Part shown: positions 11,199 through 36,213 of the stretch, piece by piece
Layout of the letters: each line of letters opens with the position of its first letter
How positions within the stretch are numbered: position 1 is the stretch's first letter
Source: Hyphochytrium catenoides
Taxonomy: Eukaryota > Protista > Hyphochytriomycota
Direction: 5' to 3'
Length of the DNA stretch: 42,492 nt
Assembly: GCA_900088475.1 (NCBI GenBank)
Contig: FLMG01001331.1
Coordinates: forward strand, 1 to 42,492
The notes under the pieces: generated by a model
Told to the model about the DNA's origin: nothing
The model's input: the letters and a program-made list of their open reading frames with translations, nothing else
Database searches by the model: none
Made by a program: the position numbers and the translations under genes

Positions 11199-11449
11199 TG
11201 TTGGATTGCTGGCTAGTGAGAAGGTTTGCCTTTTCCCTCGCGATGATTCCTCGCCCTTCCCAGCCCAGATGCTCAGACATCGAGAAGGACAAAGATCTGC
11301 AGTTTTTTTGTTGTCTCCGAGGAGGAGTTTCTGGAAGAGCTTGATCAGAACCTGTCAGAACCTGTCAAAGATCAAGGATATCCGAAGGTGATTTCCCCCA
11401 GGAGCTATGAGCTGAGTTGCTGAATGAAAGGATGGACTAACAGGTACAA

Positions 11450-16558: not shown

Positions 16559-19174
16559 TCATGAGGTCCGACGGGGACGGTGGCTGGTGGGCACCTCATA
16601 AGAGACCGAAGCAGTCAGAAAATATAGCTGCCTGGCGTTCTCCTCTCGAGACCGCTGTAAACCCGTATCATTGGCTTCATCCATTCCTTGAGAAGGTGCG
16701 GAGGAAGAGGAAGAGGCGGCGACCTTTGATAGAGGGAGCGTTAGATTATAGCCAGAGCATTTGATGGCTAGATGGTAGAGGAGAGGGAGAGAGAAGACAA
16801 TGAGCGACATCTGTCGCGCCACTATGAAGCTGTCCGTGCTGAAATCTAAGATGTGGGACTCTTCTGTCCTCTCCAAGTGATCCTTTCTGGCCCCTCCGTC
16901 CTCCAGATACTTGGTGATGTGGAGTAGGTTCCGTGCCCGCAGATGGAGACTTCCATCTCTGAATATCAGATCATAGAGAAACCAGCACTTGGTGCACAAA
17001 AGAGGGAAGAGAATGGCAACGCCTAGAAAAGGCTTCGTTACTGCTGCAGTGCCGACAGAACTTCTATAATCCTTCTCTTTAGGCTGTCCGAGTTGCCGCG
17101 TCTCTCCAGCAAATGCTGACTTCGTCTCTGCTGCCTTTGCTGGCAATGATGGTATAATGGAGTCGCAGAAGAGGCACGCTGCATAGAGCAAACACCAAGC
17201 TAGTAGCGGGAGGCAGCGCTCATCATATCTAAAAGCGTCGCAAAGGGAGACAAATAGTGCTCCTGCTTGGCCGCAAAGGAACCAAAAGTCAAAAGAGGAG
17301 CCAAACACTAGCCGAAGGAGGTCGAAGTTAAAAGATCTGGCCATGTAGAGGAAGGAGAAGGCATTCCACACGAGACAACAAGCAGCGAATACCGGCGAGA
17401 GCCAAGAATATCCGGAAGTTGTGGTTGAACTCTCACTCGCATTGCCCAGGTAGAAGGCCACTGGGATGGTGCAGACGCCGGCTAACGTAAAGCTCTGGAC
17501 CGCAATGATTTTCCATTTCGTTAATGGCAGTTGGGAACCGCTCTCGCCTCTCCCTCTCGGTCTTTGCCGCTCTGTGTTTCCTTTTATGGTCGTTCCTCGC
17601 TTGAGCTTCCGCCCACGTCTTCTTCCTACAAGGAATGAGCACGATGCAAGAACTTTGTTTTGGATGTGTCTGAACAAGTCGGTGCCGTCGCTGTACACTT
17701 TAGCCTCCCAAGGCCCAGCAATTTGCATTGGGGCACGCAGATCTTGTTGTCCTTTGCCGCCTGGCTGTTGCTTATCTGGTGTCGCTTTCTCTGTTTTCTT
17801 TTCATCTTGCCGATCCTGCCCAAGCTGCTGGTCCAGCCTCTTGCCTTCTGCTTCCTTGTGCTGCTCCAAGAAAACGTGTTCCGCGATGAGGTTACCAGTC
17901 ACTGTCGCCACCGCCTTTACTTTGAGGCTGTTCCTGGGCTGCAGCACAAGAGGCCATTGTAGGTAAAAACAAGGAACGACTCTCATCCTCTTTTCTTTCC
18001 CAGTGGTAAGGGTGGTAGGATCAAGCGTACGAGAGATGTGTGGTTGAACTGGCTGAGTCTTCTTCCTTATCTTGCCCTGAATCTTGCCACTGTCCCTCCG
18101 CCATCTCGCTCGGAAGGACTGCAAGAGAAAAGGGAGAAGGGAGATAAGAATTGTCGCTGAGCAATTCACGATAACGTCTTCCCCTGTGAGCTGCCTGCTG
18201 CCAATGGCCCAACGCAACATCTTGCCCTCCTCAAAGACTTTCAGCACCATACTCACAGACAAAGAAACGTAGAGAACGATGGCAACAAAGTATGTGGCCA
18301 AGAAGCCAGTGCTGGGTCGTAGGCGGTAGTGATAAGCATCATAGAATGGGCCCCCAGTAACTGCTTGGAGAGCGCTTGAGAAAGCGAGAAGCGGTCCACG
18401 GACGCCGCCTAGGGTGATGCCAATAGTGCCCCACAGCATTAGCTCCAGCAGGCAGATGCTCCAGAATTGAGAGCTGCTGATAACGCGCTTCAATAGCGCG
18501 ATGTTGACTGATACCAAGGCTTGTACGATCCCAGGTAACGCCCCAATGGCAACGAAGGCGGAGAGCGCTAGTCCCCATCGTTCACCTGCTAGCAACGATG
18601 CACAGGTTGCTGCAAGTGCCGCATTATATGCCAGTAAAGAGAGACGGACAAGCCGTCGATAGCGAAGAAGGCCCTCAAAGTACCGCTGATGGCCTCGAGG
18701 GCCGAAGAGTCTGCTACAGATGGAGTCTCCAAAGTCCACGACCAGTGTCCCAGCAAGTTCTTCTTCCTTTGTCGACCAGAGCGGAACCATCACCCAGCAG
18801 GTTTCTTCAGCCTCCTCCTCTTGTCCAGCTGTTGAGGTTCCTGTTGCTTCTCTTTCTCTCACAGCGTCCTCTTCTGGCCGAAACGACTTACACATGCTCT
18901 GTGATGCATCAGACGCCATCCAACGGAGGAGAGGAGATGGTGACGGGGATTGGAGACTGACGCCAGGGCCAGCAATGGAGGATGAAGAAAGCCTGACCGC
19001 CGCACTGCTTTTAGGCTCAACCATTCCCGCGGGGACTGCAGAATGACGGAATGAAGAAGAGAGGCGCATCGTCTGTAGTTTGGACTCCTTGTCTTGCTCC
19101 TCGGCGGCATGGTTGTCCTCTCTCTCCTCAGGACTGGCTCTCTTCTTTTCGCTTCCTCTGTCGGGGGCCTTCAT
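16559..19174 (-). CDS. Uncharacterised ~12-TM membrane protein, array paralogue 1 (871 aa, intronless)
   Basis: Uninterrupted ORF with ~12 hydrophobic segments. Shares the family motifs PLWS, DF.SIC.LFG, GGP, LRW.LGSR.L.GED, WPL, SSFDFWFL.GQ, YDERC, WFLY, TDSFI.AR, LYFLT..VSY with the four other ORFs. Confidence 0.9.
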   Translation of the reverse strand: MKAPDRGSEKKRASPEEREDNHAAEEQDKESKLQTMRLSSSFRHSAVPAGMVEPKSSAAVRLSSSSIAGPGVSLQSPSPSPLLRWMASDASQSMCKSFRPEEDAVREREATGTSTAGQEEEAEETCWVMVPLWSTKEEELAGTLVVDFGDSICSRLFGPRGHQRYFEGLLRYRRLVRLSLLAYNAALAATCASLLAGERWGLALSAFVAIGALPGIVQALVSVNIALLKRVISSSQFWSICLLELMLWGTIGITLGGVRGPLLAFSSALQAVTGGPFYDAYHYRLRPSTGFLATYFVAIVLYVSLSVSMVLKVFEEGKMLRWAIGSRQLTGEDVIVNCSATILISLLPFLLQSFRARWRRDSGKIQGKIRKKTQPVQPHISRTLDPTTLTTGKEKRMRVVPCFYLQWPLVLQPRNSLKVKAVATVTGNLIAEHVFLEQHKEAEGKRLDQQLGQDRQDEKKTEKATPDKQQPGGKGQQDLRAPMQIAGPWEAKVYSDGTDLFRHIQNKVLASCSFLVGRRRGRKLKRGTTIKGNTERQRPRGRGESGSQLPLTKWKIIAVQSFTLAGVCTIPVAFYLGNASESSTTTSGYSWLSPVFAACCLVWNAFSFLYMARSFNFDLLRLVFGSSFDFWFLCGQAGALFVSLCDAFRYDERCLPLLAWCLLYAACLFCDSIIPSLPAKAAETKSAFAGETRQLGQPKEKDYRSSVGTAAVTKPFLGVAILFPLLCTKCWFLYDLIFRDGSLHLRARNLLHITKYLEDGGARKDHLERTEESHILDFSTDSFIVARQMSLIVFSLPLLYHLAIKCSGYNLTLPLSKVAASSSSSAPSQGMDEANDTGLQRSREENARQLYFLTASVSYEVPTSHRPRRTS

Positions 19175-19904
19175 TATATGCCGAGCCTGCCGCCCTCCTC
19201 ATCCAGTAATGCCTTCATGCCTCTTCATCCTACTCTTTCTCCTGCTGCTGCACTAGAGCGACTCTCGTTTAAGACGAGCAGGCGAGTGAAGATCTCAACA
19301 ATGAAGTTAGAGCTGCAGAGGATTCTCTGCGGAAAATGTCATGACCTTCGACGCTGCTGGCGCAGAACGAGGAGAGAGAGAGATAGAAGTCAAGGAGCTT
19401 GAGATGGTCCTATCTCCAATCAGCGACGAGGAGGAGCTCTGCTGGGTTATATGAGCCGTTGTTAGCGTAGGATAAAATGAAAGAAAAGGAAGAACTAGTC
19501 CTCGTAACGGAGGATTTGAATGTGCGTCGCAGGAAGCTAGGGATAATAAGGCATGACGACTGTCACTCCTCGATATCCCGCCTGCTGCTGCACTTTCAGT
19601 TACTTCCTCACGAGATCAGGACTTCTACATGGATCCTTCCAAGTCCCGCACGCTGTTCACGATTCTCCTCACTCTACTGTTTGTCCGCTTTTAGATATCA
19701 CAACGTGTAGCTCCCAGCGTGCTCCAGATGATCCTCCGGTCGGTCTCTAGCTTTTTTTCAGATAACCTCTCCCCAAGTCTCTCCTCTCTTGACACTGATA
19801 TGCCAGGATCACTTGCAACAAGGGCGTCTACAGCTCGCTAGGGCCGTTCATCATCTACTAACTCTGTCCTCTTCTAACTCCCACTTGGTCTTACACCTAC
19901 TTTA

Positions 19905-20200
19905 AGTGACCTTCTTCTCGTCTTTTTCTCTCACTCCTGAGCTCCCTTCGCCTCCTTCCTGTTGCCCCTGTTCCTCTCTCTGTTCCTCTCTCTCTGTTCC
20001 TCTCCTCTTTCCCTGTCTCTGTCTGTTTGCTTCTCTCTCCTCTCTCTCTCTGTCTCTCTCTCTTTGGCTTCCTTGGCTGCTCATGTGCTCCTGGGCTTAC
20101 CTGGAGAGCGATTGGTCTCTCTCTTTGTGCTGGCTTCGCTCTCTCATCTTCGCGCTCTGTCTCGATCTCTAGCCAGGATCAAACAGTCTCTTTGCCTTTT
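19905..20200. repeat. CT/GA-rich low-complexity tract (imperfect microsatellite); a (GCT)6 run lies nearby at ~20358
   Basis: Directly visible runs such as CTCTCTCTGTTCCTCTCTCTCTGTTCCTCT and TCTCTCTCTCTGTCTCTCTCTC. Confidence 0.85.
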
Positions 20201-21220
20201 GAGATGGGGAGAGCGACTGAGGACACCTAACTTAGTCCAGTGATTGTGTAACGGCCTGGGACTCAAAAATCTTAGGTCAAAAAGCCCTCGAGATAATAAC
20301 AGTGTTTGTTCGTCTTGAGAGTGGTCTTGAGGACTTTAGGACTTTGGTTCTCTCAGAGCTGCTGCTGCTGCTGCTGCCAGAACTCTCTCCCTTCTTCGGG
20401 CTCAAGGTCCCTCTCCACACTTCTTATGCCCCTGCTGAGAGCTCGTTCCAGCCTCTCCCTCTGCTCGTCCGTCTTCTCACTTCTTCTGTTACGGGCCCTT
20501 CCACATCAGAAGCTTACTTCTCTTCTTTGTAGGTTGTTGATGGGTCTTAATCATTGACTACGAACCTTCGCTGACTCTCCAGCCAGCTGCTTGGTCAGCG
20601 CTAGACCTCAGCGACTCTAGAGATGATCGCTCGCGAGGTCGGACTGAATCAGGAAGAAGTAATAACCGTTCTGAGGTCTAGATGATCCTCCTTCCTTCAC
20701 TAGGAACAGCTTTCATAAGCGTCCTCTTTTGCGGCGCTGAATGTACCTTCTCCAGCCGTCGCCTGTCTCTCTGTTCGAATGCGTTCGCTACTGTTCAAAC
20801 AATAATAGACAGGGGTCAAGTCCCTCAGCGGAGAAGGGCATTGGAGGTCGCGAGCGGAGGTCACCTCTTCTTGTTCTAAACCTTGATAGTTATAGCTAAA
20901 AACGAGCTCTTTGTTTCTGCCGCTTTCTCCTTCGACCTATATAAAAGCGACAACATCACTGCCTGCAAGGGAATAGCAAAGGCCAGACCTTGAGAAGAAG
21001 ACTTCTTATGTCGTCCTATGGCCTCGAGCAAGGAGGAATAACCTTCCCGCGGCTTCTTTTAACGCATAAACAAGGTCCTTCTTGGCACTACATTAGGCAG
21101 TATCTACCTTTGGCTGCTGTTTATTTGGAGGGAGTAAGAACTCTAACAGCAGAGAGGCTTCACTTAGCAACCCTGAACTGTCGTCGTTACCTCGCCCTCC
21201 AGTATAGGGGCTACCCTTCT

Positions 21221-23632
21221 TCATGTGTCCAGTCTCACAGGCACCTCATAAGTCACCGAGCCAGTAAGAAAGTAGAGTGTAGTACCTTCACATGCCGTCG
21301 TTAGAGAAGCAACAGTAGCACCGCCGCCAGAAGTTCTTCTGCTCTTGGTTGACAAAGAGGAGCGACCGGAAACGCTGTCTGAAGCAGCCCGCTTTCCTAC
21401 TTTCCTCCCGCGACTAGAAGATGAGAAAGCTGCGAGATGAAGGATAAGAGGAAGAGAAAACACGATGATGGAAGTCACCCTGGCGATGATGAAGCTATCG
21501 GTGCTAAACTCCAAAGTGTCTGCCCCTGTAAAGGCCTCCTCCCCAGTGATAGTATCCGGAAGATTCTTCCTGTCGACCCCAAGCTCCAGTGTCTTGGTGA
21601 TTCTTACAAGGGTTCGGAAACGCAGCTGCATGGTCCCACCGCCATAGAAGAGATTGTAAAGGAACCAGCATTGCGTTCCGATCAGAGGAACCAGTATCCA
21701 CATGCCCATAAACTGCTTTGTGATAACAGGAGGACGGGACTGTCCCTTCTTGCTGTCCAAAGCATCTTCGCAAACTGGAAGCATAAGGTCACTGAAGAGA
21801 CAACTAAGGTAGAGAAAGCTCCAGGCGAGCACCACCAGGCAGCGGTAATCATACTCAAGCGCATCTGAGAGTGAGATGCCGCCCGCCAGCGTCTGGCCAA
21901 GAAGAAACCAGAGATCAAACGACGACTTCATAGCTAGCCGAAGAAGATGGAGGTTCCAAAGGCGGGAGAGGTAGAGAAAACAAGCGATGCTCCATAAAAA
22001 GGCAACGATAGAAAGCAATCGTAAAAGCCAAGGAGCTAGTTGAGGTGCAGAAGTGCCTTTCTCTTGTTCTCTGATAGAAAGGTAAAGCACTAGATTGATC
22101 AGGCCAAGTCCAGTGAGAAGAAAGCAACGTGCTGCAAGTTGGAGAATGATAGGAGGACATAAAAAGGCTACCCTGTCATTCACCGACTCGTCCACTCCCT
22201 TGTTGGCCTCTACCACTGTCTTCTCGGTGCCGTCGCTCTTTTCGATCTGCTCCGCCGGGTGCGGGGCAGTTACAGAGTGCTTTCTTCTTCTAGAGCAGGC
22301 GGTTCTTAGGAGGCAGGAAGAACAGCTTTTTATTAGCCGATGACATTGATGCAACGCCGGCAGCGATCTGAACAAACTGCTTGTTACGCCTTCTTCAGTC
22401 TTGAGCAGGAATGACGGTCCGGGAAGCGCAATATGTAGAGAGACTAGACCGTTGAATGGTTTGCACTCTGTCCATGCTTCGGGACTTTCTGATGATGGAC
22501 CAGTTTGAGCGCAAGGTTTTTGTGGCTCTTGACCCTTTCCTATGGGATATATCACTAAGGGCCATTGTACCTCAGTGCAGGGGATGCGCCTTGTTCGCCG
22601 CAGAGATATTGTACCGCCTTCTCCTCCTTTATCGCTTTCTCCTCCTTTATCGTTTGTGATAGATCCAGAACTTCTGGGCCAGGTTGCCTTTACAGAGCTT
22701 CCTAGTCGGCGCAAACGAGTACGTGCGCTCTGGATGAGATGGAAGGAGAAGTAGACGACAAGAGTGGCGGCCGAGTGGATGACAACGTCTTCGCCACTTA
22801 GATATCGGGAACCAAGCGCCCATCTCAAGACTTTGCCCCCATGAAAAACTTTGAATGCCACACTTCCTGCTAGGATGCAATATACGACGAGACCAAACAA
22901 GAAAGAGAAGACGGCACTGCCACTGGACCGGAACCGATAATGCCAGCTATTATTCATGGGACCCCCGACGGTACCTGTCAGCGCGGTGCCAGCTGATAGA
23001 CAGATGCCCCGCGTACCCCCAAGAATCACTCCCACAGTTGCCCACAAGCCGACAGTCAGTGCCATCAGCGTCCAAAACGACGGGTTCCTTGCTGATTTAC
23101 CTAGTAAGGTTGGGTTAAGGCCTAAGATGAGCTGCAGGTTTCCTGGCAAAGCCCCAAGCACTGAGAAGATAGATAGGGGAGTTCCAATACTCTCTCCGAG
23201 GAGGAGAGCCAAACAGATTGCTAGGAGTGAGAGGTTGTAACACAAGCGCGTAAGTCTTGCAAGACCCTTCCTTCTTCTGAAGAGCTCAAGAAACGCATCG
23301 TGAGCACGCCGACCAAAAAGCAAGCCGCATATGGATGTGTTGAAGTCTATGATGACCGTCTGGAGCTGTTCCTCTTCATCCGTGGACCACAAAGGAGCCA
23401 GACACCATCTCATCTGTCTCATTTCAACATGCCCGACGTTACGGGCACAGGCAGTATCCAAAGGTCCCTTTGTGGCGTTTGACCCTCTCCTGCTTCCAGT
23501 GGTTGCCTCCTCCGCGTTTGGCAAGCTTCCATTGCAACTTAATGCATGCTTCCCACGATCACCTTTTGCCAATGGGTGCATATCTGCCGATCGCTCATCC
23601 TCCTTTAGCAGACTTTTCGTGACTGTCTGCAT
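21221..23632 (-). CDS. Uncharacterised ~12-TM membrane protein, array paralogue 2 (803 aa, intronless)
   Basis: Uninterrupted ORF with the same motif series (APLWSTDEEE, DFNTSICGLLFG, GSRYLSGED, SSFDLWFLLGQ, YDYRC, STDSFIIARVTS, LYFLTGSVTYEV). Confidence 0.9.
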   Translation of the reverse strand: MQTVTKSLLKEDERSADMHPLAKGDRGKHALSCNGSLPNAEEATTGSRRGSNATKGPLDTACARNVGHVEMRQMRWCLAPLWSTDEEEQLQTVIIDFNTSICGLLFGRRAHDAFLELFRRRKGLARLTRLCYNLSLLAICLALLLGESIGTPLSIFSVLGALPGNLQLILGLNPTLLGKSARNPSFWTLMALTVGLWATVGVILGGTRGICLSAGTALTGTVGGPMNNSWHYRFRSSGSAVFSFLFGLVVYCILAGSVAFKVFHGGKVLRWALGSRYLSGEDVVIHSAATLVVYFSFHLIQSARTRLRRLGSSVKATWPRSSGSITNDKGGESDKGGEGGTISLRRTRRIPCTEVQWPLVIYPIGKGQEPQKPCAQTGPSSESPEAWTECKPFNGLVSLHIALPGPSFLLKTEEGVTSSLFRSLPALHQCHRLIKSCSSCLLRTACSRRRKHSVTAPHPAEQIEKSDGTEKTVVEANKGVDESVNDRVAFLCPPIILQLAARCFLLTGLGLINLVLYLSIREQEKGTSAPQLAPWLLRLLSIVAFLWSIACFLYLSRLWNLHLLRLAMKSSFDLWFLLGQTLAGGISLSDALEYDYRCLVVLAWSFLYLSCLFSDLMLPVCEDALDSKKGQSRPPVITKQFMGMWILVPLIGTQCWFLYNLFYGGGTMQLRFRTLVRITKTLELGVDRKNLPDTITGEEAFTGADTLEFSTDSFIIARVTSIIVFSLPLILHLAAFSSSSRGRKVGKRAASDSVSGRSSLSTKSRRTSGGGATVASLTTACEGTTLYFLTGSVTYEVPVRLDT

Positions 23633-25495
23633 CGTTACCGTCGGGGTGAGGGAGGGGCCAGTTCAGCTTTGACGCAAAGGATGATAAAGAGCGATGACCG
23701 GGGCACAGCCGGTATAGCATCACCGGCTTCGGTGTAACATTATGATGCACAATGAAGACTTTGTGGACATCACAGCAGTCCTTGCCTCGTCTTCTGCCAC
23801 AGAGGAACATACGTCCTTATTGATCATTCTTCTTCTCCTGGACCCAACATTGCTCTCTCTCCATGAGTCGCGCAGGACTCAAAGTATCATAACGTTGTCT
23901 GTCAGGTCGTGTGACACGCTATTCAATCAAAAGGTCTGTCGACGCCAGGAAGAAAGAGTTGCACTCCTCCGTCCCAGCTCTCATTAGGGGCCCAAACGAA
24001 CAATACTCGCTACCGCCTTTCTTGGCATTCCCCGTTAGTTTCAGTGTCTTCTTGGAAAGACTTAAGACTAGGGCCTTGTAACGAACGAACCAGATATCAG
24101 CATCAGCGCACCGACTGCCTTCAAGGGAGCAAGGAGGCAATCTCTTCCACGTGCCTGCTATCACCCAGGGCATTTCAGCCGGCAGAATAGCAGGAGAAGC
24201 CCTCTTTTTCCTTATGCCGACGGAAGACTCGTAGAAGGAGGAAACGGCATTTGTTGGACTTCGTTCGTCCACTGAGTCTAGTTTAAAGACTTTGTTGCCA
24301 AGCTCTTCTCCTAATGCTAACCTGGGTGTGGCCGATGCCCTCTCTTTCACGTCTGAGAGCATCCTTTATACAGCAAGAACTCATCTGCATTGTCCCATGA
24401 CTTATTGTTGGTCGACTGTAACCACTCCTTTGATGGGGCTTTTCCTGATGCGTAACGGTCATGCCGCCATCCCAACAGGCTCATCAGTGCTGCTATCTCA
24501 GCTACTAAGTGCTGGCTAGTCATTTGCTAACTCTTATCTTTGAAACCAACTGCATTGAGGGAGACACAGCGACGGCTCAGGCTTTCTTGTGCCAAGAGCA
24601 ATATCGGGCCTTGTGTGCTCCTGCAAGGCACTCCTCTGAATAAACAGTCGACAGCTATCATCATCTTCTTTAGTATTGTCATAGGCCGGCAGGAGGACGA
24701 GAGCTGGACAGCTGTGCCGTGGGCACCTGTACCTCTCATACCCTAGGACCTCCTGCTGCTTTCCACCGTCCCAAAGCGTCTCATGGTCAGACAGTTGAAC
24801 GCAATGACTCCGTTTACCACCCATCTCTTCCCGTAGAAGCACGCGATGGCCATTATAATCACCGTTGCACCACGTTAGACAGAAGCTTCTTCTACTACTA
24901 GTAGTAGAGAAATAGAAGCAGAAACGGATGTATGGGAGCTCAGGGTTTTTGCGATGTTCTCCTACTGCCAGTGCACTGACCGATCGAGCCAAACGCCCAA
25001 ACAGAAAGCCCTCCCTCCTTACGAAGTCATTGCTCCATCATATTGCCGGCGTAGCTTTCCAATGTGACCGTAGAAGCAGAGCTAGATGATCATCATGACA
25101 GGCGGAAAGGTAGACCATGACAACCAGATGGCAACAACGTTAACGATCGGAGTGCTAGCCACCAATGAGAGATGTGTCTAGGGCATCATTAATTACGCTT
25201 GGTAAGAGCAGGACCTATATCATAGCAAGCCCTCCTTACTGCCGCGCAGGAGACTCAGGCAGGAGGGCAAAGTTTAGCAGTACAGTTCACGAATGAGTTA
25301 ACTATATAAAAAGCTGGTGGACGTCAAGCAGCACTCAGCAGAGAGCGCTTGCGAGGCCGATCCGGGACAAGATGTTGTCGTCAGTTGATGACAATCTTCT
25401 GACAAGTAAGTCATTGTAAGTATAAGAAGTACATACAGTCAATTATTCGTCGCTGTTTCTACTCCTACGACATTGGACTGAGAACCTTGACGGCG

Positions 25496-28036
25496 TCATC
25501 GCCTTCTTCGAGGCCTTGCGGGAATGGCGTAGGATACATAGCCAGTGAGGAAGTAGAGGACAGTTCCTTCCACGGGATCTCCCGGCAATGGCCGCTCCGT
25601 CGCGACATTGAACTGGTCGTCTGAAGTAGGGGAACCTGATGAGGTGGAAGACTGACCTCCGGATACTGACCTAGTGGTAGGTGTGGAACCGATGACTGGG
25701 CGATGGGCAGAGGCGATAAGCAGATGGTACAGAAATGGAAAAGAAAGGATGATGATACTTGTAAGCCTTGCGATGATGAAGCTATCCGTGCTGAAGTCCA
25801 ACGTGGTATCGCCACCTTCGTCCTTTCCAAGTGCTGTCTGCACCCCTTCTTCTACTCCTATCTCCAGATACTTGGTGACGTGAAGAATCGTCCTAAACTT
25901 AAGGTGTAGGCTTTCGACATAGTAAAAGAGGTTATAGAGGAACCAGCACTGCGTGGCCAGGAGTGGGAGGAGGACTCCTAAACCCAGCAAAGTCTTTGTG
26001 ATAACGGCTGGACGTGTCAAGGAAACATTGCCTTCTCGCTTTTGACCGCGTTTCTTCCATAACGGCAGCATGGAGTCGCTCAAGAGACAGGCTGTGTACA
26101 TGAAACACCAAGCCAAAATGATGAGACACCGCTCATCATACTGAAAAGCATCCGATAAGGAGAGCAGCGCACTAACGCACTGTCCAAAGAGGAACCAGAA
26201 GTCGAAGGATGACCGGCAAAGTAAGCGTAGAATATGCAAGTTCCAAGTGGAGGATAGATAAAGGAAAGACACCAAGTTCCATACGAAGGTGGTGATGCAT
26301 AATGCCTTCAACTTGTCTACGTGGCTAGAGCTTTGCTGCTGACGTTGAGCGTCCCTCGCTTTATAGCTAAAGGAAAGCGCCGTCGGTATCAGCAGGACAC
26401 CAGCAACGAGTGAGACGCGGACTGCCCACAGCTTTAGCCTCTTGGCAACCTGTTGAGCGTCTGTAACATCCCTTGTGATCCATTTCCTGGTCCTATCAAC
26501 CCCATTTTCTCCTCTATCTATTGAGTCTCCACCGATCCTGTGTAGGAATCCTAACCCTGCACTGGCAGCATCCAGAAGGGAGCGCTCACTCTCTATGCGC
26601 GAGTACTCTGGCAGAGTTATGATGAGGGGCACGCGGCCGTTGAATACGGGTGAATTGTTCCTTTCATCGTCCTGGTGCCGCAGGATGGGCACAACGGCCC
26701 TTGAGCTAAGAGGCTTTCCGCCAGCTTCTACCTGCTGCAGAACTAAGGGCCAACGGATTTGTAGACAGGCAAGCTTCTTCATCGTGGCGGTACCACCACG
26801 ACTGCTAATGGCTGATTGGTGATGAGTACCATCCTCCCTCTTTACGCGTCGCCAGATGGAACGGCCACCCTGGACAAGGTGGGGGATGAAGTAGATGATG
26901 AGAGTGGCCGCGGAGTGGATAACGATATCTTCTCCGCTGAGATAGCGAGAACCGAGTGGCCACCTTAGCACCTTTCCGCCCTTGAAGACCTTCAGAGCCA
27001 TGCTAGCCGCGACAGTGCACACAAGCAGGGTTCCAAAGAACCATGATACAAAGGCACCGGCACTCGATCTAAGACGATAATGCCAGCTATTCTCAATAGG
27101 CCCACCTAGCACTCCAGTGATGGCTGTGCTGACAGAAAGGAAGACTCCACGAGTGCCGCCGAGGAGAACACCGACCGTGGCCCAGAGAACAAGCATAAGA
27201 ACGGTGATTATCCAGAACTCTGCGTTCTTGGCTACTTTCCCTAAGAGTCGAATGTTCAGTCCCAGCACCATGAGAAGATTTGCTGGCAAAGCTCCAACCA
27301 AGGCGAGGATAGATAGCGGTGTACCGAGCTTCTCGTCTAAAAGGAGTGTGGCACAAGTAGCGAGCAGCGACGCATCAAAGCATCGCCGAACGATAAAGCC
27401 AAGGCCCTTCGTAGCCCAAGCAAGGAACCGTAGGTAAGCCTGATGGGCCCGGGTCCCAAAGACCAACTGGCACAAAGATGCGTTGAAATCCACGACTATT
27501 GTCTGTCGCTGTCTTTCCTCCTCTGTGGACCATAAAGGCACCAGCTCCCAGTGGCCACTTTGCTGGTGACCTTCTTTCTCTTCTACGTTAGCAAGCGAGG
27601 TTCTCCCGTTGACAGCCCTACTGCTTCTTACTCTAATTGGCAGGGATCTCTCCGCCGCTGGGTTTGTGCCTCTCTTCTGCGAGGAGCCAATGCAGCCAGA
27701 AGATTGCGGATGTTCTCCAGGGCTCTTGATGACCATCTCTTCTTCCGATGTTGTTGCTGCACCAGGTAATAGCAGGGAATTAACATTCGGCCCATCTCTC
27801 TTTGGCGGAATACTTGCCGAAGCATTTTCTCTTCTAGGAGCGCCATTGCCACTACTCATGGTGCTTTGAGTCGTACTGATGGCGTCTTTCTCTCGGGTAG
27901 AGGACAGTCCTTGGACTGAGACTATCACGAAGGGCGAGGTTGAGCCCTCACTCATTATCCCTCCTCGCTTGCCGCCGAGAGAATCTCCGTCCATGTCTAG
28001 GAAGGGCAGAGCGCCGAAGGCTAAGCTACTCCTCAT
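25496..28036 (-). CDS. Uncharacterised ~12-TM membrane protein, array paralogue 3 (846 aa, intronless)
   Basis: Uninterrupted ORF with the same motif series (VPLWSTEEE, DFNASLCQLVFG, GSRYLSGED, SSFDFWFLFGQ, YDERC, STDSFIIARLTS, LYFLTGYVSY). Confidence 0.9.
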   Translation of the reverse strand: MRSSLAFGALPFLDMDGDSLGGKRGGIMSEGSTSPFVIVSVQGLSSTREKDAISTTQSTMSSGNGAPRRENASASIPPKRDGPNVNSLLLPGAATTSEEEMVIKSPGEHPQSSGCIGSSQKRGTNPAAERSLPIRVRSSRAVNGRTSLANVEEKEGHQQSGHWELVPLWSTEEERQRQTIVVDFNASLCQLVFGTRAHQAYLRFLAWATKGLGFIVRRCFDASLLATCATLLLDEKLGTPLSILALVGALPANLLMVLGLNIRLLGKVAKNAEFWIITVLMLVLWATVGVLLGGTRGVFLSVSTAITGVLGGPIENSWHYRLRSSAGAFVSWFFGTLLVCTVAASMALKVFKGGKVLRWPLGSRYLSGEDIVIHSAATLIIYFIPHLVQGGRSIWRRVKREDGTHHQSAISSRGGTATMKKLACLQIRWPLVLQQVEAGGKPLSSRAVVPILRHQDDERNNSPVFNGRVPLIITLPEYSRIESERSLLDAASAGLGFLHRIGGDSIDRGENGVDRTRKWITRDVTDAQQVAKRLKLWAVRVSLVAGVLLIPTALSFSYKARDAQRQQQSSSHVDKLKALCITTFVWNLVSFLYLSSTWNLHILRLLCRSSFDFWFLFGQCVSALLSLSDAFQYDERCLIILAWCFMYTACLLSDSMLPLWKKRGQKREGNVSLTRPAVITKTLLGLGVLLPLLATQCWFLYNLFYYVESLHLKFRTILHVTKYLEIGVEEGVQTALGKDEGGDTTLDFSTDSFIIARLTSIIILSFPFLYHLLIASAHRPVIGSTPTTRSVSGGQSSTSSGSPTSDDQFNVATERPLPGDPVEGTVLYFLTGYVSYAIPARPRRRR

Positions 28037-29656
28037 TCATCGTAATCTGCTACCAACAAGACGCCCAGCCGCAGAACGGAGGGACCACACCCTCATCATG
28101 AAAGAAGGAAGCAGAAGGCCATATATATGAAGAGTGCTTGTGGTCAAAAGGGCCGTTGAGCTTGCACTAGGACTAGAGAAGAAGAACAGCAGGATCTGAT
28201 GGATGGCACACCCGCTGAGCACCGGCCATTTCGTGTCAGCTTACTCTTTGAGAGGAGAGTGCTTCTCTATCAAACGACAACGCTGCGCCTGTTGACATTC
28301 ATGACGACTAAGGCAAGGGCGGGCGTTCCCGGTGTTTCTCTCTCTTCAGCTTCGCAGCAAACAACCACGCGCTGCTGGCAACTGCTTCTGCCGCCCATCT
28401 TCTTTGAAGCCCTGGAGCCGGAGACCTCTTAATGTTCTCATCCTCCTTCTTCGTATTCCTTCTCTCCCTAATGGTAACCTCTGCTGCTCCGTCCTTCAAG
28501 GTCAGGTTAACAGTTCCTGGAGCATTTTATAAAAAAGTGGAACACAGAGAGGCGATCTGGGAGCGGCTAACCGTACAGTGCGATGTAACGGGCTTCCATC
28601 ACTGAAAGTGGTTATGCTACTGGGCAACCTTTATCGCTGGCTCTCTTGACCTGCAAATGTTCCTCACGGAAAGAAAGACCACGAGACAGGCAAGGGTCCT
28701 GCCGAGCGCGAAAGTCGAAAAGTGAAACATCATTCATAGCCATTTTGGCCAGCAGGGATCACGAAGGCAGAACGTAGGTGGACGTAATAGTAGGAGAGGT
28801 TGAGGCTGCAGGCGATCAAGGAGTGAAGCAGGCAGCAGGCGACCATGATGATCCTGAAAGCTCTCAATAATTGACAGAAACATGACCACGAAAAGGAGAC
28901 GAAGAGACAGGAAGCTGGCTTCCCAAACGTAGCCAGAGAAGGATCGAAGAGGAACGTAGAACCCGTGACCTGTTACTGATGCCAGCAGGGCTCAAGCCAT
29001 GACCAACATTGAGCTACTCACAGAGGATTCTAACCACCGGCCTCATAATGCCGTTCATAATGCTGGTGTAGTTCCGCACCCACTACAGCGTGCCGCCCCA
29101 GTCACGTGCTCTACCTAGCCAGCGGCCAATGATACATGCGACTGGCAGTGTGAAGGCTGCTTCCGAAGAAGGAAAAGGATATGAGGCGCTGTAACACTGA
29201 ATGCTCTTGCTACACAGCTAGCAGTTCTTTCCTAGGGATGCACAAACCTTTCAAGCATAAGCTAAGAAGATTCATCGACTGTTTCACTAATGCCTGGGTA
29301 AGGTTAGAGAGCGAAGAGCAGGAAGGCTCGGCCGTACCGCCTTTGCCACTTCACCTCCGCAGTCCGCCTCATGCGGGATCAAGTAAATGGTCGTCGGTGC
29401 CGGGAGTTTAGCCAAAGCAGGCAGCACTTTCTCGCTAAGTCTAATACATTACCTTGACTTCGATTGGCTCTATTCTATAATTAACTGTGTATCAAAGGAT
29501 GGGAAGTGGTAGCCTGGGGATGATAGACATACGACCACTAGCAGGGGAAAGTGGGCTCTATTCTCTTTCGGCGATAAGGTGGAGATTCATGTTACCGCTC
29601 AGACTCTTCCTCCAATTGAGGGTTGCGGATCTTTGTTTTCTACCGATCATGGCACG

Positions 29657-32284
29657 TTAACTCCTTCTTCCTCCGCGCCTCTTGCCTTTAGCTAGGACTC
29701 GATAGGATACTGAGCCGGTTAAGAAGTAGAGCAAGGTGCTACTTTGTGGGACTGATGACGTCCTCTTTCCCTGTAAAGTCCTGGCCCAGTTGTGAGAGCA
29801 AGAGACGACGGCTAGATGGTAGAGTAGCGGGAGGGAGAAGACTATTATAGATGTCAATCTCGCGATGATGAAGCTATCTGTGCTATAGTCCACATCACTG
29901 ATGTCATCTCTGCCATTTGCCAATGAGTCCTCCGTTTTGGCAGCTCCCATCTCTAAGTACCTTCTGATATGAAAGATAGTCCTGAACCGCAGATTGAGGC
30001 TATCGATCCCGTAAAACAGTTCGTAGAGAAACCAAGCCTTGGTGAACATAAGAGGAAGTAGTACACCCACTCCAAGAAGGTGTTTGGATATTGCTTGCTG
30101 AGCCACGCAAGGTCTTCTTTTGCTGTCCTTGCAAGCTGTAGGCGGAACCATGCAATCAGTGAGAAGACAGGATATAAAGAGCAAACACCAAGCTAGGAGG
30201 GGTAGACAACGCTCGTCGTACTGAAAGGCATCCGCTATGGAAAGCAGCGCACAAACCGACTGGCCGACGAGGAACCAGAAGTCAAAAGAAAACTTCAAGA
30301 CCAAGCGCAGGAGCTGATAGTTCCACAAACTGGAGAGATAGAGTACGACGACCATATTCCAAAGCAGAACAGTAGCGGAGATAGCAGGTGATAGCCACTG
30401 TAGAGAAGAAGATTGTGGCGCGGCCCTTCGTGCCCATGCTACATAATAACATGCTGGGATCATCATGACTCCGGCAAGTATGAGAGACTGGACTGCCACC
30501 CGATATAGCGGACTCGGGGTTCCACACGAGACACCGCACCCCGACATTAGAAGATGGGGCTTGATGATAGGCCTCCTTGGCGGCCCCAACCGATCCTTAC
30601 GCTGTCTTCCTTGATCGAAGGAAGTCCCAACATCTTTTGACGGATGCTCTGGTGACTCTGGGACAATCAGGGCTGATCCTTGCATATTCCAGTTGCGACC
30701 CGCTCGGAGGCATAGAAGAAAGTGACTGAACCGGTTGGATAGCTTGGCGCTTACAAAAGCGAAGAAGGAACGGTCACTTTCCAGTTGAGTAGGCTTGGGT
30801 GGCACTATAATCAAGGGGACCAAGAGCTCGGGAGTGCTTTGCTTGCGTTGTTTAACCGGGTCGGGTCGGCTGTTCGCAGCAATGGTGGAAGGAGTTGAAC
30901 CACCAAGTCGACCTTCCACTCTTTGCAAGAGGAGTGGCCATTTGATATCTGAGCATGGGAGTACTCTCAATCTACGCCCTTCTCCCCCTCCAGCCGCCAC
31001 TGGAGGAAGAGGAGGCTCTGGTTGACTGGATTGGGGCTTTCTAAATCGTCGCCACATCGAGCGACTGCTCCTGACAAACTGAGGAAACAAATAGATGGCT
31101 ATAGTGGCGGCAGAATGTATGACAATATCCTCGCCACTCAGATAGCGAGAACCCAGAGGCCATCTGAGAACGTTGCCCCCTCTGAACACTCCGAGTCCAA
31201 CACTTCCAGCCAGAACTAGACAGAGCAAGATACCAACCAAGAAAGAGAAGAAGACGCCAACCCCAGACCTGAAACTACAGTGCCAGCTGTTCTCCATCGG
31301 CCCACCTAGCACACCCGTGAAGGCTGTTCCCGCTGAAAGAAACACGCCACGCCAGCCGCCCAGCATAAATCCTACTACTGTCCATAGTAGAAGCATCAGG
31401 AGAGTTACTGTTAAAATCTCAGCATTGTTAGCGACCTTCCTTAGCAATGGCGGATTTAAACCGAGAAGCAGGAGCATGTTGGCGGGTAGGGCGCCTAGCA
31501 GAGCCACGACGGAGAGCGGTGTTCCCAGTCTCTCTCCTACTACTAATGTCAAGCAGGACGCCAGTAGGGCAACGTCATGCAAGAAGCGAAAGACATAACC
31601 CAAACCAAGTCTCCCGCTCCATGCCACAAAAGCCAAAAAAGCTCGATGTCCCTTCTGCCCAAAGAGGATCCGACAGAGAGATGTGTTAAAGTCGACTATC
31701 ATTGTTTGAGAGTGCTCTTCCTCCTCGTTGGACCACAGAGGGGCAAGTTCCCAGTAGTAGCAAATGGAGTCCTTCTCATGCTTGCTACTGTCCTGTTCAC
31801 CAGTCCTTTCCTTTGCTGCTGGCAGCACCACTTCACCTGCCAGACCAGTCCCCGTTATGGTCCCACCCCCACAAGAGCCTGGAATATCTTCCACTTCCTC
31901 TGACATCGCCTGCTCTCTTTCCTCAGATTGATAATCTGCCAGTAAGTCCGCCTCCCGCTCATGTCTAAGAGACGACCCTTGCCAAGTGAGTCCTGAGCCA
32001 GCCGAATGTAGAGAGTCATCAGCCGAGCCAGGAAGCAGCTGTCGATGGGATGGGCCATGGTGTTTGCGAATCATTACATTATCTTGCGTCTTCTCTTGTG
32101 CCTCTGGAGATTCAATAGATGGTGACTGTTGGCAGCGGCAGGAAGGCGAAAGGGCCGAATCCTTAACCCAGAGAGGAGTAAGAGGAGCCTGAGAGAGAGA
32201 GGATATGCACACCTGATTGTTACATGTCTCCGAGCTCCCATCTCTTTCCCGCTCCTTCTCCACCTGCTTAGTAGTGCTCTCCAT
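29657..32284 (-). CDS. Uncharacterised ~12-TM membrane protein, array paralogue 4 (~875 aa, intronless)
   Basis: Uninterrupted ORF. The first ATG is at 32284 (the track start at 32302 is a TTG). Same motif series (APLWSNEEE, DFNTSLCRILFG, GSRYLSGED, SFDFWFLVGQ, YDERC, STDSFIIARLTS, LYFLTGSVSY). Confidence 0.9.
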   Translation of the reverse strand: MESTTKQVEKERERDGSSETCNNQVCISSLSQAPLTPLWVKDSALSPSCRCQQSPSIESPEAQEKTQDNVMIRKHHGPSHRQLLPGSADDSLHSAGSGLTWQGSSLRHEREADLLADYQSEEREQAMSEEVEDIPGSCGGGTITGTGLAGEVVLPAAKERTGEQDSSKHEKDSICYYWELAPLWSNEEEEHSQTMIVDFNTSLCRILFGQKGHRAFLAFVAWSGRLGLGYVFRFLHDVALLASCLTLVVGERLGTPLSVVALLGALPANMLLLLGLNPPLLRKVANNAEILTVTLLMLLLWTVVGFMLGGWRGVFLSAGTAFTGVLGGPMENSWHCSFRSGVGVFFSFLVGILLCLVLAGSVGLGVFRGGNVLRWPLGSRYLSGEDIVIHSAATIAIYLFPQFVRSSRSMWRRFRKPQSSQPEPPLPPVAAGGGEGRRLRVLPCSDIKWPLLLQRVEGRLGGSTPSTIAANSRPDPVKQRKQSTPELLVPLIIVPPKPTQLESDRSFFAFVSAKLSNRFSHFLLCLRAGRNWNMQGSALIVPESPEHPSKDVGTSFDQGRQRKDRLGPPRRPIIKPHLLMSGCGVSCGTPSPLYRVAVQSLILAGVMMIPACYYVAWARRAAPQSSSLQWLSPAISATVLLWNMVVVLYLSSLWNYQLLRLVLKFSFDFWFLVGQSVCALLSIADAFQYDERCLPLLAWCLLFISCLLTDCMVPPTACKDSKRRPCVAQQAISKHLLGVGVLLPLMFTKAWFLYELFYGIDSLNLRFRTIFHIRRYLEMGAAKTEDSLANGRDDISDVDYSTDSFIIARLTSIIVFSLPLLYHLAVVSCSHNWARTLQGKRTSSVPQSSTLLYFLTGSVSYRVLAKGKRRGGRRS

Positions 32285-33329
32285 GCACTCTTCCTTTTCC
32301 AAGATGCCTCTTCGATACCGATGGAGGCGCGGCCACCACCATCATCACGCCGCTCTCCAGATCTCTTGCAAAGGGTGCTTTGCCCTCATAAGACTAACGA
32401 CCAGAGTCAAATGCATTGTGCATTGTGAAGTGGCCCTGCTGACTGCTGCTGCTTTGAAGTGGTGCTTAGAGTATCATTCCAAGGGCAAGCCTCGGGGGCT
32501 GGTGGCTAAGCTTTATTCGTTAGCTCTGCCGCACACCTTATAATCTGTTGGCAAAAGACAGCTTTTATCATCATCACCATCAGCGAGGTGCACCTCCAGA
32601 ATGCTAAGCTCAAGAAATAAGATTAGAGAGTCCCTCCTCCACAATGGCCTTGTCTTTCCTTGTCAGCAGGTGACTGCAGAAGATGATGGGCTAGAGGCGG
32701 GAAGAGAGCAGATAAATGGCCAGTGGTACCTCTTGAATCCTCCCATTCCTTCCACCATCTTTCTTCCTTAATAGCTTCTGCCATCTCTTCTGCTGCTTTT
32801 ACTTGCTGACTTCACGTGGGCCCTTCTCCTTCTTCCCACACCTGGTCCTTCGGTAGGCTTGCGTCACCGTCTCTGCTCCGCTCGTGCTCTTCTACTGCTA
32901 TCATCCTATTGAGCTTACACATCCCATCATCTTACTCCTCTCCTGCATCACTCTAGAGCGGCAGTGTAATGTGCCCTTGGCAGCTTGTACTTCTTCCTTC
33001 GCTTCTGGCGCTTCCCCTTGTGGTCTTCGCCAGCGTTGTACCCTCAAGCTACGGACAGGGAAGGGCGCTACACTTAGCTGCTAACGAGCGATTTTGGTGT
33101 AACGGTCCATTGGGTCTCAGCCTGATCTGTGGCCTCATCTGCCGCTTCTCATCAGTAGAATGAGACCCTCGGTCTGGTAGGGCTCATGCCTGAGGAGAGG
33201 GCTCATACTCTTCTCTAGCTCTGCCCTGTCTTGTCCTATTGCAGTGTCTCTCTCTTCCTTCTATCCTGGTTCTTATCTCCTTTTAACTTTCCCTCTGTCA
33301 GATGACCGCTGCCTGCAGCAGAAGATTGC

Positions 33330-33600
33330 ATTTTGAGCTGAGTCCAACGATTGGCATCAATGCATTGAGTTTTGTCCAATGTAGAGAAATTGCACTGCAC
33401 GGGTCAAAGGTCAGTGTCCCCGTTGAATGAGCTATCAGCCTTTTGAGGGCGCATTAAGGGTTCAGGTAGACAGTGAGCTCCATCATATCGCTTGAGTCTT
33501 GCTATTAAACATGGGGGAACGGTGGAACCTTGCTCTGAACTTCTCAGCATCAAGCAAATCTATCTTCTTCGCCGTCCAGCGCCCTTCTGCTCTAACTAGC
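33330..33600 (-). pseudogene. Possible Myb/SANT-like (trihelix) domain relic
   Basis: GRWTAKKIDLL..F..NSKTQAI*WSSLS followed in another frame by KTQCIDANRWTQLK resembles the three-Trp Myb/SANT-like pattern. Stops and frameshifts are present, and the W2-W3 spacing is too long. Confidence 0.25.
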
Positions 33601-33981
33601 ATACGTTCCTCCTCAAGGTGTCCTTGAGCTTTTGAGCAGCTCAACTTCCTGACTTTGAAAGATTAGTCATCATCAGCCTCTCTAGTACAAAAAGAAGTGC
33701 GACTCAGAGCTAATATGCTTTCTCTCTTCTCCTCTCTTCTACAGATGACAATTCTTCCGGTCTTTCAGCAGTAGCTGCACTCCGGTTGTTAAACATGTAG
33801 CTAATCATGGCTGATGCATCACAGCGGTCGACCAAGGTAGAACTATTAACCTGTTGGCGTGGGGCTTGCCTGTTGCTCTTAGGGTTAGTCCCTAAGCAGA
33901 GGTCGACTAGGTTACACTAATCCTTGTCTCACGCTCCTCAAGATATAGCAACCTTGAATGGTGCCTGATTACCACCTGCTC

Positions 33982-36213
33982 TTACATCTTTCTAAGGCCT
34001 TGGGGCTCCACCTCCCCTGGTGACACTTTCGCTCTACTAGTACGGCTGCTTGTGGGGACTTCATATGAGACCAGGCCGGTTAGGAAATAGAGAACGCCTT
34101 CCTCAATGCTAGGTTCTGCTTGCTGGTTCTTCGCAGCGATCCCAAACCCGCCTCGAGCATGTATGACGGTCGTGCTCCGACGAGAGCCTCCCGGATCGGG
34201 AGCCAAGGGTCTTGGTTTGGACTGCCGCTTCGTAGAGGCTGTCAGCAGATGGTACAGGAAAGGAAGAGAGAACAGGAGAATGGATGACATTCTTCCAATA
34301 ATAAAACTGTCCGTCGTAACATCTAAGCTCGAGGGAGGAAGGATCCCTTGCGCGCTTCCTGCTCCCTCCTCTGTTCCAGCCAGTGATGGCGCCTCATTCT
34401 CTAGGTACTTGGTGATGTGAAGCGCTACCCTAAAGCGGAGGTGGCTGCTACCGCTTCGAAACACGAGATTGTACAAGAACCAGCAGTGAGTGGCCAAGAG
34501 AGGCAACAGCACGCCCCCTCCAATAAAGCGCTTCGTGATGACCAATGCTTTGCCTCCTGCTTGCGCATTGCTCGCGCGGCGGAGGATGGAGTCACTGCAG
34601 AGGGAAGAAACGAAGAGGATGCACCAGGCTGTGAGGCTAATGCACCGCTCATCATACTCAAAGGCGTCCGACAAAGAGAATAACAGCGCCATTGCTTGAG
34701 CGATCAGGAACCATACATCAAAAGAGGATCGAAGCATGAGACAGAGGACATCGTAGTTCCACATTGTTGTCAGATAGATGGCAATAGCAAAACTCCCTGT
34801 GAGGCTAAGGCTTGCCACCAGAGGAGAGAAAACCCCTAAGAGTGAGCAGTCCGGGAAATCTCTTCGAAGCTCTCCCAAACTGAGGCTTAAAGGGATTAGA
34901 ACAACGCCGAGACAGATAAGTATGCGCAGTAAGGACGCTCGGCGTTGTTCAGCGCCTACTCTATAGTGATGATGATGAACGGCGGTCGATGAGCCATCCA
35001 CAGCCCCCTGTTGCACCTCCGCGCATGGAGTGACAAGAGTGTGTCTGTTGCTAGTTCTTGAGTGGCAGCCAATCTCTAGCGGAGGTGGAGGGGATGGTAA
35101 GCCTGGCCCACGCTTCTGCTTCCGTTTTCTGACTCCCTTTACGAACCAATGACAGTTAGAGAAAAGACTGGCTGCAGATATAGAGGTATGGACAAAGGGT
35201 TTGCTTACGTCCAGCAGGACAACCGCCTGAAGAGGATCTTTATGTCCAATAGAGTCGCAGCAAAGCTGCTGTGTTTGCTCCTGTTGAGGTGACTCCCTAG
35301 CTTCAGAAAGAGAAGTTAAACGTCGTTGAGCAGCCATTGTCTCTTCAATGATAAGAGGCCAGCTCAGCGCGGAGCACTGGATCCTCTTGGTCTTGATCGC
35401 AGGTCCGGAGGAGTAGGCGCGGAATCCCTGATCTTTCTTGCGCATGCGCCAGTAGCTCACCGTGCGAACTAGCGGTCGCCCAAAATAAATAAGGAGGGTG
35501 GCTGCTATGTTAAGAACAATGTCCTCTCCTGTCAGCTGTCGAGTGCCAAGAGGCCAGCGAAGGATAGTGCCTCCACTAAAAACCTTGACTAGCACGCTTG
35601 CCATGAGAATGCAGTAGATGATAATAGCCATTACCAGGGACCATAAATGAAGGGCCGTGGACCGACAGAGGTAGTGGTAACTATCGTACAGGGGACCGCC
35701 AATAAGAGCCGTCGCTATAGCCCCAACAGACAGGAAAAGACCGCGAAGACCACCCATCATGACGCCCACGGTGCTCCAAAGGGCGACCATAAGTATGGCC
35801 ATGAACCAGAAGTCAGACGTAGCAGAGCTCAGCCTCACAAGGGTGGGATTGAGACATAAAACAAGCTGGATATGGACAGGAAGCCCTGCCAGTACCACAA
35901 ATGCTGATAAAAGGGTCCCAACCTTTCTTTCCACGATCAACGTTGCACACACAGCGACGAGCGACATATTATAGAGGAACGCCGACAACATGACGAGGCG
36001 CTTATGGCGCCTGAGGAAGCTGAAGAGGCGGCGATGTCCCTCAGGGCCAAAGAGCAAGCTACATATGGAGCAGTTGAAGTCTATCTTGGACCACGCCGGT
36101 TGCTCTTCTGTCCATAAAGCAGAGATAGTCCATGAGGTGACCGTGCAGGGAGACCCTAAAGGTTCATTAGGATTCAGCAGGGTGCTCTCGTCGGTTCTGC
36201 TGGAAAAGATCAT
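33982..36213 (-). CDS. Uncharacterised ~12-TM membrane protein, array paralogue 5 (743 aa; short N-terminus, an upstream exon is possible)
   Basis: Uninterrupted ORF with the same motif series (SALWTEE, DFNCSICSLLFG, GTRQLTGED, SSFDVWFLIAQ, YDERC, TTDSFIIGRMSS, LYFLTGLVSYEV). ACTAAC..CGCAG just upstream of the ATG may be an acceptor. Confidence 0.9.
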   Translation of the reverse strand: MIFSSRTDESTLLNPNEPLGSPCTVTSWTISALWTEEQPAWSKIDFNCSICSLLFGPEGHRRLFSFLRRHKRLVMLSAFLYNMSLVAVCATLIVERKVGTLLSAFVVLAGLPVHIQLVLCLNPTLVRLSSATSDFWFMAILMVALWSTVGVMMGGLRGLFLSVGAIATALIGGPLYDSYHYLCRSTALHLWSLVMAIIIYCILMASVLVKVFSGGTILRWPLGTRQLTGEDIVLNIAATLLIYFGRPLVRTVSYWRMRKKDQGFRAYSSGPAIKTKRIQCSALSWPLIIEETMAAQRRLTSLSEARESPQQEQTQQLCCDSIGHKDPLQAVVLLDVSKPFVHTSISAASLFSNCHWFVKGVRKRKQKRGPGLPSPPPPLEIGCHSRTSNRHTLVTPCAEVQQGAVDGSSTAVHHHHYRVGAEQRRASLLRILICLGVVLIPLSLSLGELRRDFPDCSLLGVFSPLVASLSLTGSFAIAIYLTTMWNYDVLCLMLRSSFDVWFLIAQAMALLFSLSDAFEYDERCISLTAWCILFVSSLCSDSILRRASNAQAGGKALVITKRFIGGGVLLPLLATHCWFLYNLVFRSGSSHLRFRVALHITKYLENEAPSLAGTEEGAGSAQGILPPSSLDVTTDSFIIGRMSSILLFSLPFLYHLLTASTKRQSKPRPLAPDPGGSRRSTTVIHARGGFGIAAKNQQAEPSIEEGVLYFLTGLVSYEVPTSSRTSRAKVSPGEVEPQGLRKM

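Follow-up and report, generated by a model that had tools for sequence, protein, structure and literature searches.

The five-gene array and its surroundings

The contig FLMG01001331.1 of Hyphochytrium catenoides (GCA_900088475.1) was analysed over a stretch of 42,492 nt, hereafter called the window, and all positions are given on its forward strand. The window contains exactly five open reading frames (ORFs) of more than 700 codons, hereafter called G1 to G5, all of which are on the minus strand; the next longest ORF corresponds to 202 amino acids. The predicted proteins have 32–44 % amino acid sequence identity with each other along their entire length, with approximately 100 invariant columns in the alignment, and the motifs SFDxWFLxxQ, DAxxYDxRC and LYFLTxxVxY are common to all five. 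The spacing between the genes is 1.6–2.0 kb, and no similarity between the spacers was detectable at the DNA or the translated level. A sixth copy or a fragment of one was not found in the window with tblastn, nor was an upstream or promoter motif common to the five genes. Base composition and the G+C content at third codon positions (GC3) of the array match those of the flanking genes. The five genes are ancient duplicates, intact and intron-free, and are arranged head to tail.

G1 (16559..19174, 871 amino acids), G2 (21221..23632, 803 amino acids) and G3 (25496..28036, 846 amino acids) are each intact and intronless, as judged from the ORF and the alignment with the paralogues. G4 (29657..32284) corresponds to 875 amino acids when translated from the first ATG, and its ORF opens at 32302 with TTG, giving 881 amino acids. 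G5 (33982..36213, 743 amino acids) is the shortest member and was used for a full-length structure model; an exact look-up of its sequence showed that it is not on record. The array genes are regarded as intronless because each ORF spans the whole region homologous to full-length relatives from oomycetes, from the N-terminal to the C-terminal strand motif. The initial annotation of this DNA had described five intact ORFs on one strand sharing one ordered set of motifs, and the ORF list and the alignment agreed with this. Its length of about 875 amino acids for G4 corresponds to translation from the ATG at 32284, and its description of the genes as intronless was upheld by the coverage of the oomycete relatives.

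The array is flanked by genes of a different structure. Directly downstream of it, a multi-exon gene on the minus strand (13013-15199) encodes a PALP-domain protein (pyridoxal-phosphate-dependent enzyme). Further along, at approximately 1.3-6.9 kb (1316-6859, minus strand), a multi-exon gene in short ORFs of different frames encodes a chromatin reader with several PHD fingers and one PWWP domain. In both genes the coding sequence is scattered over short ORFs that change frame, which indicates introns, and the uninterrupted ORFs of 2.2–2.6 kb in the array therefore stand out. A unit of 116 bp is present in two tandem copies (89 % match) at 8414-8646, in a stretch without a recognised gene. The approximately 6 kb upstream of G5 (36300-42492) contains no ORF with a recognisable domain; its reading frames are of low complexity and rich in Ser, Leu and Pro, and a local GC-skew peak of 0.175 is found at 36-38 kb.

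Architecture and relatives of the predicted proteins

In all five proteins, hydropathy identified six hydrophobic segments per half. When the profile of the N-terminal halves was compared with that of the C-terminal halves, they aligned over 218 columns with an hhalign probability of 97.5 % (E 7.6e-12). This alignment pairs EFWF..N in transmembrane segment (TM) 3 with FDFxF..Q in TM9 and the DxR after TM3 with the WDxRC after TM9, as well as the strand motifs which precede the helices. Because the two profiles align, each protein is understood as a tandem duplication of a unit in which a strand pair is followed by six helices and a hairpin.

G5 was modelled with AlphaFold2 from a family alignment of 32 sequences; the model contained twelve long helices and had a predicted template modelling score (pTM) of 0.79. 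The five strand elements in the model are formed by residues 28-32 with 43-45, 275-291, 331-337 and 707-720. Confidence was low only in the N-terminal tail, the linker between the halves (approximately residues 361-416), the loop between TM11 and TM12 and the linker before the C-terminal strands. When the C half was folded alone (pTM 0.77), the helices were still confident and the C-terminal strands fell below a predicted local distance difference test score (pLDDT) of 50, which fits a sheet assembled from both halves. As modelled, the protein is composed of two homologous modules joined by a linker predicted to be disordered, and the strands of both modules contribute to one sheet. Approximately 40 % of each protein from the window is charged or Ser-rich sequence of low confidence and predicted cytosolic location, of a kind that the oomycete homologues do not have. 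That these genes belong to a real, selected gene family with a 2 × 6 TM architecture is very probable.

The two repeats were located in every gene, all on the minus strand. In G1, the N-terminal repeat (17939..18796, amino acids 127-412) contains the strands, six TM and the hairpin, and the C-terminal repeat (16589..17533, amino acids 548-862) contains SFDFWFLxxQ, DAFRYDERC and the C-terminal YFLTASVSYEVP strands. The corresponding repeats are found at 22547..23407 (amino acids 76-362) and 21239..22144 (amino acids 497-798) in G2 and at 26735..27550 (amino acids 163-434) and 25520..26455 (amino acids 528-839) in G3. Those of G4 are at 30923..31753 (amino acids 184-460) and 29693..30526 (amino acids 593-870), in the numbering of the 881-amino-acid ORF. 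The N-terminal repeat of G5 (35344..36132, amino acids 28-290) comprises strands 28-32 and 43-45, TM1-6 and the hairpin 275-291; its C-terminal repeat (34054..34959, amino acids 419-720) comprises TM7-12, the residues D499, Q506, D516, D521, R523, D541, R595 and R641, and strands 707-720.

The five proteins had no match in Pfam, and no credible Pfam match was found in any of the 32 family sequences. An exhaustive HMMER search with a profile of the five genes returned 27 cluster representatives at E ≤ 1e-3 among 1.84 billion, most of them matched in both halves. The relatives for which a source is named are all hypothetical proteins, from Pythium oligandrum (TMW55528.1, TMW57520.1, TMW55495.1), Pythium insidiosum (KAJ0402923.1), Globisporangium polare (GAB9474387.1) and Lagenidium giganteum (DAZ98517.1, DAZ98518.1, DAZ95768.1); the remaining ones are Logan, JGI or MetaClust records. 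A Foldseek search of the AlphaFold Database (AFDB) clusters gave best E values of 8e-17 to 1e-11, with template modelling scores (TM-scores) by hit of up to 0.75. The matches at E ≤ 1e-3 are uncharacterised proteins, among them the cluster representatives A0A2D4C5A0, A0A5D6XGM1, A0A662X8M0 and K3WJ54, and were taken for family members. Relatives were not found in collections of prokaryote genomes, metagenomes or viral contigs, and a full-text literature search found no publications on the family, on its locus tags or on otopetrin-like proteins in stramenopiles. The family is known publicly only as hypothetical proteins, and appears to be an unnamed membrane-protein family restricted to oomycetes and their kin.

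The oomycete relatives are collinear with the proteins of the window from the N-terminal to the C-terminal strand motif and share the 2 × 6 TM duplication. They are likewise encoded by single ORFs in local clusters: Lagenidium has three copies within 10 kb, two of them fused into a single gene model, and a further locus (L004) has three within 12 kb. In contrast, identity between the two groups is only approximately 17–21 %, the proteins of the window form a separate clade and are 150–300 amino acids longer due to tails and linkers predicted to be disordered and cytosolic, and most polar residues of their N module have been replaced. In a maximum-likelihood tree of the C halves, G1 to G5 grouped with the fragment P0001 from locus L001 (support 98/99), and P0002 (locus L002), an 895-amino-acid protein encoded by a single ORF, was the sister of G1 to G5 plus P0001 (support 99/98). 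The 22 oomycete-type sequences were on the other side of the tree. Within the array, G2, G3 and G4 grouped together and the genes at its ends, G1 and G5, were more distant.

The initial annotation had pointed to a likeness of these proteins to hypothetical transmembrane proteins of oomycetes, and both the profile search and the AFDB matches support it. Its prediction of twelve TM was confirmed by hydropathy and by the AlphaFold2 model, and its statement that no enzymatic or transporter signature is present agrees with the lack of any Pfam match or PDB sequence relative.

Some records of the relatives deserve separate mention. In L. giganteum (NSDO01000170.1, L003:10001-14043), the 868-amino-acid model DAZ98518.1 fuses two complete intronless copies (approximately 10067-11695 and 12343-13983), and the adjacent model of 1105 amino acids carries a third family copy in its final portion. 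The sequence most closely related to the window clade (Logan SRR28521185, L001:8732-11102) is in pieces on different frames, which may be due to introns or assembly errors, and it adjoins genes for CitMHS-type and ZIP-type transporters. The AFDB relatives K3WJ54 ('Ion transport domain-containing protein') and K3WU21 ('DUF4203 domain-containing protein') bear automatic names, and neither Pfam match was reproduced in the scanned members. A further AFDB match, A0A6C0C1K0, was considered as a protein from a viral metagenome by a guess from the A0A6C0 accession series, but this was set aside as neither BFVD nor the viral contigs gave it any backing.

Topology, conserved residues and selection

The side of the membrane with the termini, the strands and all the long linkers carries approximately 22 Lys and Arg residues, compared with approximately 8 on the opposite side. 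From this bias an N-in/C-in topology was deduced, in which the variable regions are in the cytosol. Both termini, the strand elements with their modelled sheet and all the long variable linkers are thus predicted to be cytosolic. Variability is concentrated in three segments, all of low confidence (disordered) in the model: the tail at the N-terminus and two linkers, one joining the repeats and one preceding the C-terminal strands. The loops predicted to face outwards are short, and few parts of the protein are more conserved.

Conservation of the helices is highest in TM3, 6, 9, 10 and 12 and lowest in TM1, 5, 7 and 8, and most of the conserved positions are occupied by charged or polar residues, both within helices and at their ends. 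F498, F502, Q506, D541 and R641 (G5 numbering) are invariant across the family alignment, the oomycete relatives included. P112, W136, R157, T239, C280, D516, D521, R523, L538, P545 and R595 are near-invariant; among the oomycete relatives, D516 and R523 are nearly invariant and D499 and D521 are kept in 87 %. The motif ELxFIxGxVxYxxP at the C-terminus ends the collinear family alignment.

The two repeats of the window proteins differ in the retention of these residues. D499, Q506, D516, D521, R523, D541, R595 and R641 of the C repeat were kept in 40 of 40 instances in the window genes, compared with only 16 of 40 for their equivalents in the N repeat, where D155 is replaced by G, N142 by M, E or T and N182 by R, L or S. 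TM4 and TM10 each have a single Arg, at the outer end. Each module would contain a polar cluster towards its outer face and one mid-membrane amide. In the C module these would be D516, D521, R523, R595, R641 and Q506, while the inner ends of TM9 and TM10 would carry D499 and D541. The cluster of the C module appears to be retained throughout the family.

Between paralogues, the non-synonymous divergence (dN) estimated by the NG86 method was 0.35–0.55 in the core and approximately 0.8–1.5 in the alignable loop columns; the synonymous divergence (dS) of the core was not computable because it was saturated. Haplotypes were compared using Logan contigs from three DNA runs with the same organism label. 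Two haplotypes approximately 1 % apart were found at 21100-27000, differing by single-nucleotide polymorphisms (SNPs) and small indels. The haplotype counts are a sample, as 40 of the 104 variants were listed, with the coding SNPs coming from G2 and G3. The 25 listed coding differences in these two genes comprised 17 non-synonymous and 8 synonymous ones, of which 0–1 non-synonymous and 5 synonymous were in helices and conserved strands and 16 non-synonymous and 3 synonymous in tails, linkers and loops (core versus loop, Fisher p 0.001–0.006). A predicted outer loop outside the hairpins contained one of the 17 non-synonymous changes. The listed indels in G3 (three of three) were multiples of 3, and the spacers also showed indels of 1, 2 and 4 bases, including a 2-base indel 6 bp upstream of the G2 ATG. 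The helical core is under purifying selection, and the tails and linkers evolve almost freely. The strong divergence at synonymous sites and in loops, from which the genes had initially been annotated as old and maintained by selection, is seen here in the saturated dS and the constrained core. The organism or the sequenced culture appears to be heterozygous or polymorphic, with the assembly at 21100-27000 being a mosaic of two forms.

Comparison with known folds and possible function

A profile search of the PDB gave chance matches only (CorA, E 1.4), and neither Foldseek against the BFVD viral models nor the ESM Atlas, searched both by shape and by features, yielded any match above noise. 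Since the polar residues are retained in the C repeat and largely replaced in the N repeat, the proteins were read as a conduit with a working C repeat. A conduit for ions or small solutes would be the most economical explanation of the polar-residue pattern, and it would parallel the otopetrins, in which the C pore has been reported to be dominant (PMC6483595). The protein would then be pseudo-symmetric, with a polar path along TM9, TM10 and TM12 of the C module doing the work, leading from the outer cluster through the mid-membrane Gln to the inner Asp residues. The N module would be a degenerate structural partner, and the disordered, charged cytosolic linkers may be regulatory. On the basis of the conserved residues, a function as a channel or carrier (transporter), an option already named in the initial annotation, is proposed tentatively.

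The overall plan would be most like the double six-helix design of the otopetrins (OTOP1, OTOP3, CeOTOP8; PF03189; PDB 6NF4, 6NF6, 6O84, 8UG4), which, like the family in the window, are composed of two homologous halves of six helices each, twelve in all. Otopetrins were the only solved chains to align collinearly over all twelve helices (265–277 residues), although the resemblance was weak, and the C half of the window proteins aligns to the otopetrin C domains. It is also the C-terminal half that is more strictly conserved in the window family and critical in otopetrins (PMC6483595). Otopetrins are characterised by Gln-Asn/Asp-Tyr constriction triads, Asn/Asp on TM5 and TM11 and an FYR motif on TM12 (PMC6483595), and lack the additional sheet, predicted to be cytosolic, of the window family.

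Several results weigh against the conduit and its kinship with otopetrins. Foldseek found no significant match in the PDB (best E 0.26 with the whole chain as query and 0.76 with the C half, TM-score ≤ 0.26) and none among the models of Swiss-Prot, the reviewed part of UniProt (TM-score ≤ 0.20). The otopetrin family PF03189 was not matched at E ≤ 1 by the five genes or by any of the 32 family members. Compared with the residues described in PMC6483595, and as far as sequence patterns go, FYR is absent and TM12 carries T..SF...R; conserved polar residues are also missing from TM5 and TM11, and the amide that is conserved is on TM3 and TM9 instead. Both the topology and the positions taken to face the lumen are predictions. 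Among the listed haplotype variants the pooled pN/pS (ratio of non-synonymous to synonymous polymorphism) is approximately 0.7, a value not significantly lower than 1 (binomial p 0.49), and the contrast between core and loops was drawn from 25 coding SNPs because only 40 of the 104 variants were listed. True kinship with the otopetrin fold is doubtful. A slightly more doubtful reading makes the family a stramenopile branch, deeply diverged, of the double-barrel proton-channel fold of the otopetrins, in which the C repeat would work, the other barrel would be degenerate and the cytosolic sheet would act as a clamp.

Carriers of the MFS and other 2 × 6 TM types also have twelve helices derived from an internal duplication. 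They differ from the window proteins in that Foldseek TM-scores were 0.10–0.20 against solved and Swiss-Prot models, no MFS chain was among the best 50 VIA rows and no Pfam match to MFS was obtained. Voltage-gated-like 6-TM (Ion_trans) and two-pore channels were not matched either, with no hit to PF00520 at E ≤ 1 in the 32 members and no repeated basic residues of the S4 type.

Invariant Asp and Arg residues at helix ends, together with one mid-membrane Gln, are typically found in membrane enzymes and lipid transporters as well, and no channel signature is present in the family. The proteins could therefore be membrane enzymes or lipid handlers (scramblases, flippases, acyl or glycosyl transferases), with the Asp, Arg and Gln being catalytic or binding head groups. 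This is rather unlikely, as no Pfam or PDB sequence match to such families was found, MOP/MATE, MBOAT, GT-C and XK/TMEM16 were not among the best fold-match rows, and the window clade has no conserved His or DxD-type motif. The long disordered linkers, absent from the oomycete homologues, would suit a structural or scaffolding protein without transport activity, which would recruit partners through them, for example at an organelle or cortical membrane, and the look-alikes by features in the ESM Atlas were weak and orphan TMEM-type proteins. A scaffold is nevertheless improbable: the most conserved positions are buried charged or polar helix residues, which a pure scaffold would have little reason to keep, and the linkers are the least constrained parts.

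From the array, the lack of introns and the variable loops, the initial annotation had concluded that the genes may be a repertoire of chemosensory receptors or gated channels. Under this reading, divergence of the paralogues would serve the recognition of different external ligands. Tandem, intronless and divergent paralogues are indeed present both here and in the oomycete relatives, and the family is lineage-restricted, with variable copy number. With the arrays of chemoreceptors, namely the insect odorant and gustatory receptors (OR/GR 7TM ion channels) and the G-protein-coupled receptors (GPCRs), the window shares only this genomic pattern; number of helices and fold differ, the helices being twelve as 2 × 6, not seven, and TM-scores of fold matches against GPCRs and 7TM ion channels did not exceed 0.25. 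The argument breaks down at the decisive point, since the parts that vary, which in chemoreceptors face the ligand, are here predicted to face the cytosol and to be disordered, whereas the outward loops are short and conserved. The listed haplotype changes in helices and strands are, moreover, almost all synonymous, and a predicted outer loop outside the hairpins contains only the single listed non-synonymous change mentioned above. A chemosensory role is thus quite improbable. Decaying or unexpressed ORFs, or ORFs derived from a mobile element or virus and without cellular function, would account for intronless genes in an intron-containing neighbourhood and for the pooled pN/pS, but such an origin is very hard to reconcile with the other evidence. 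Five ORFs of 743–875 codons are still open while the spacers have lost all similarity, the listed haplotype differences in the core are almost only synonymous and the coding indels multiples of 3, composition is as in the neighbouring genes, no viral relatives were found by sequence or fold, and homologues are conserved across oomycete genera.

The array genes form a divergent clade of an unnamed, uncharacterised family, with a 2 × 6 TM plan of a known general kind. What is new here is this divergent clade with long linkers, the evidence that the core is under selection and the finding that the two repeats retain their polar residues to different degrees. The family is without a name, a Pfam model, a solved relative or a paper that could be found, and yet its core is conserved from Pythium to Hyphochytrium, in multi-copy arrays. 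Major pathogens of both crops and animals are found among the oomycetes and their kin, whose lineage-restricted membrane proteins could serve as selective targets. If kinship with otopetrins were true, the origin of that channel fold would move outside the animals, and oomycete-like organisms would carry arrays of it; if not, the family would be a candidate for a new pseudo-symmetric membrane fold. In either case, the conserved network of Asp, Arg and Gln in the C repeat provides concrete residues for mutation.

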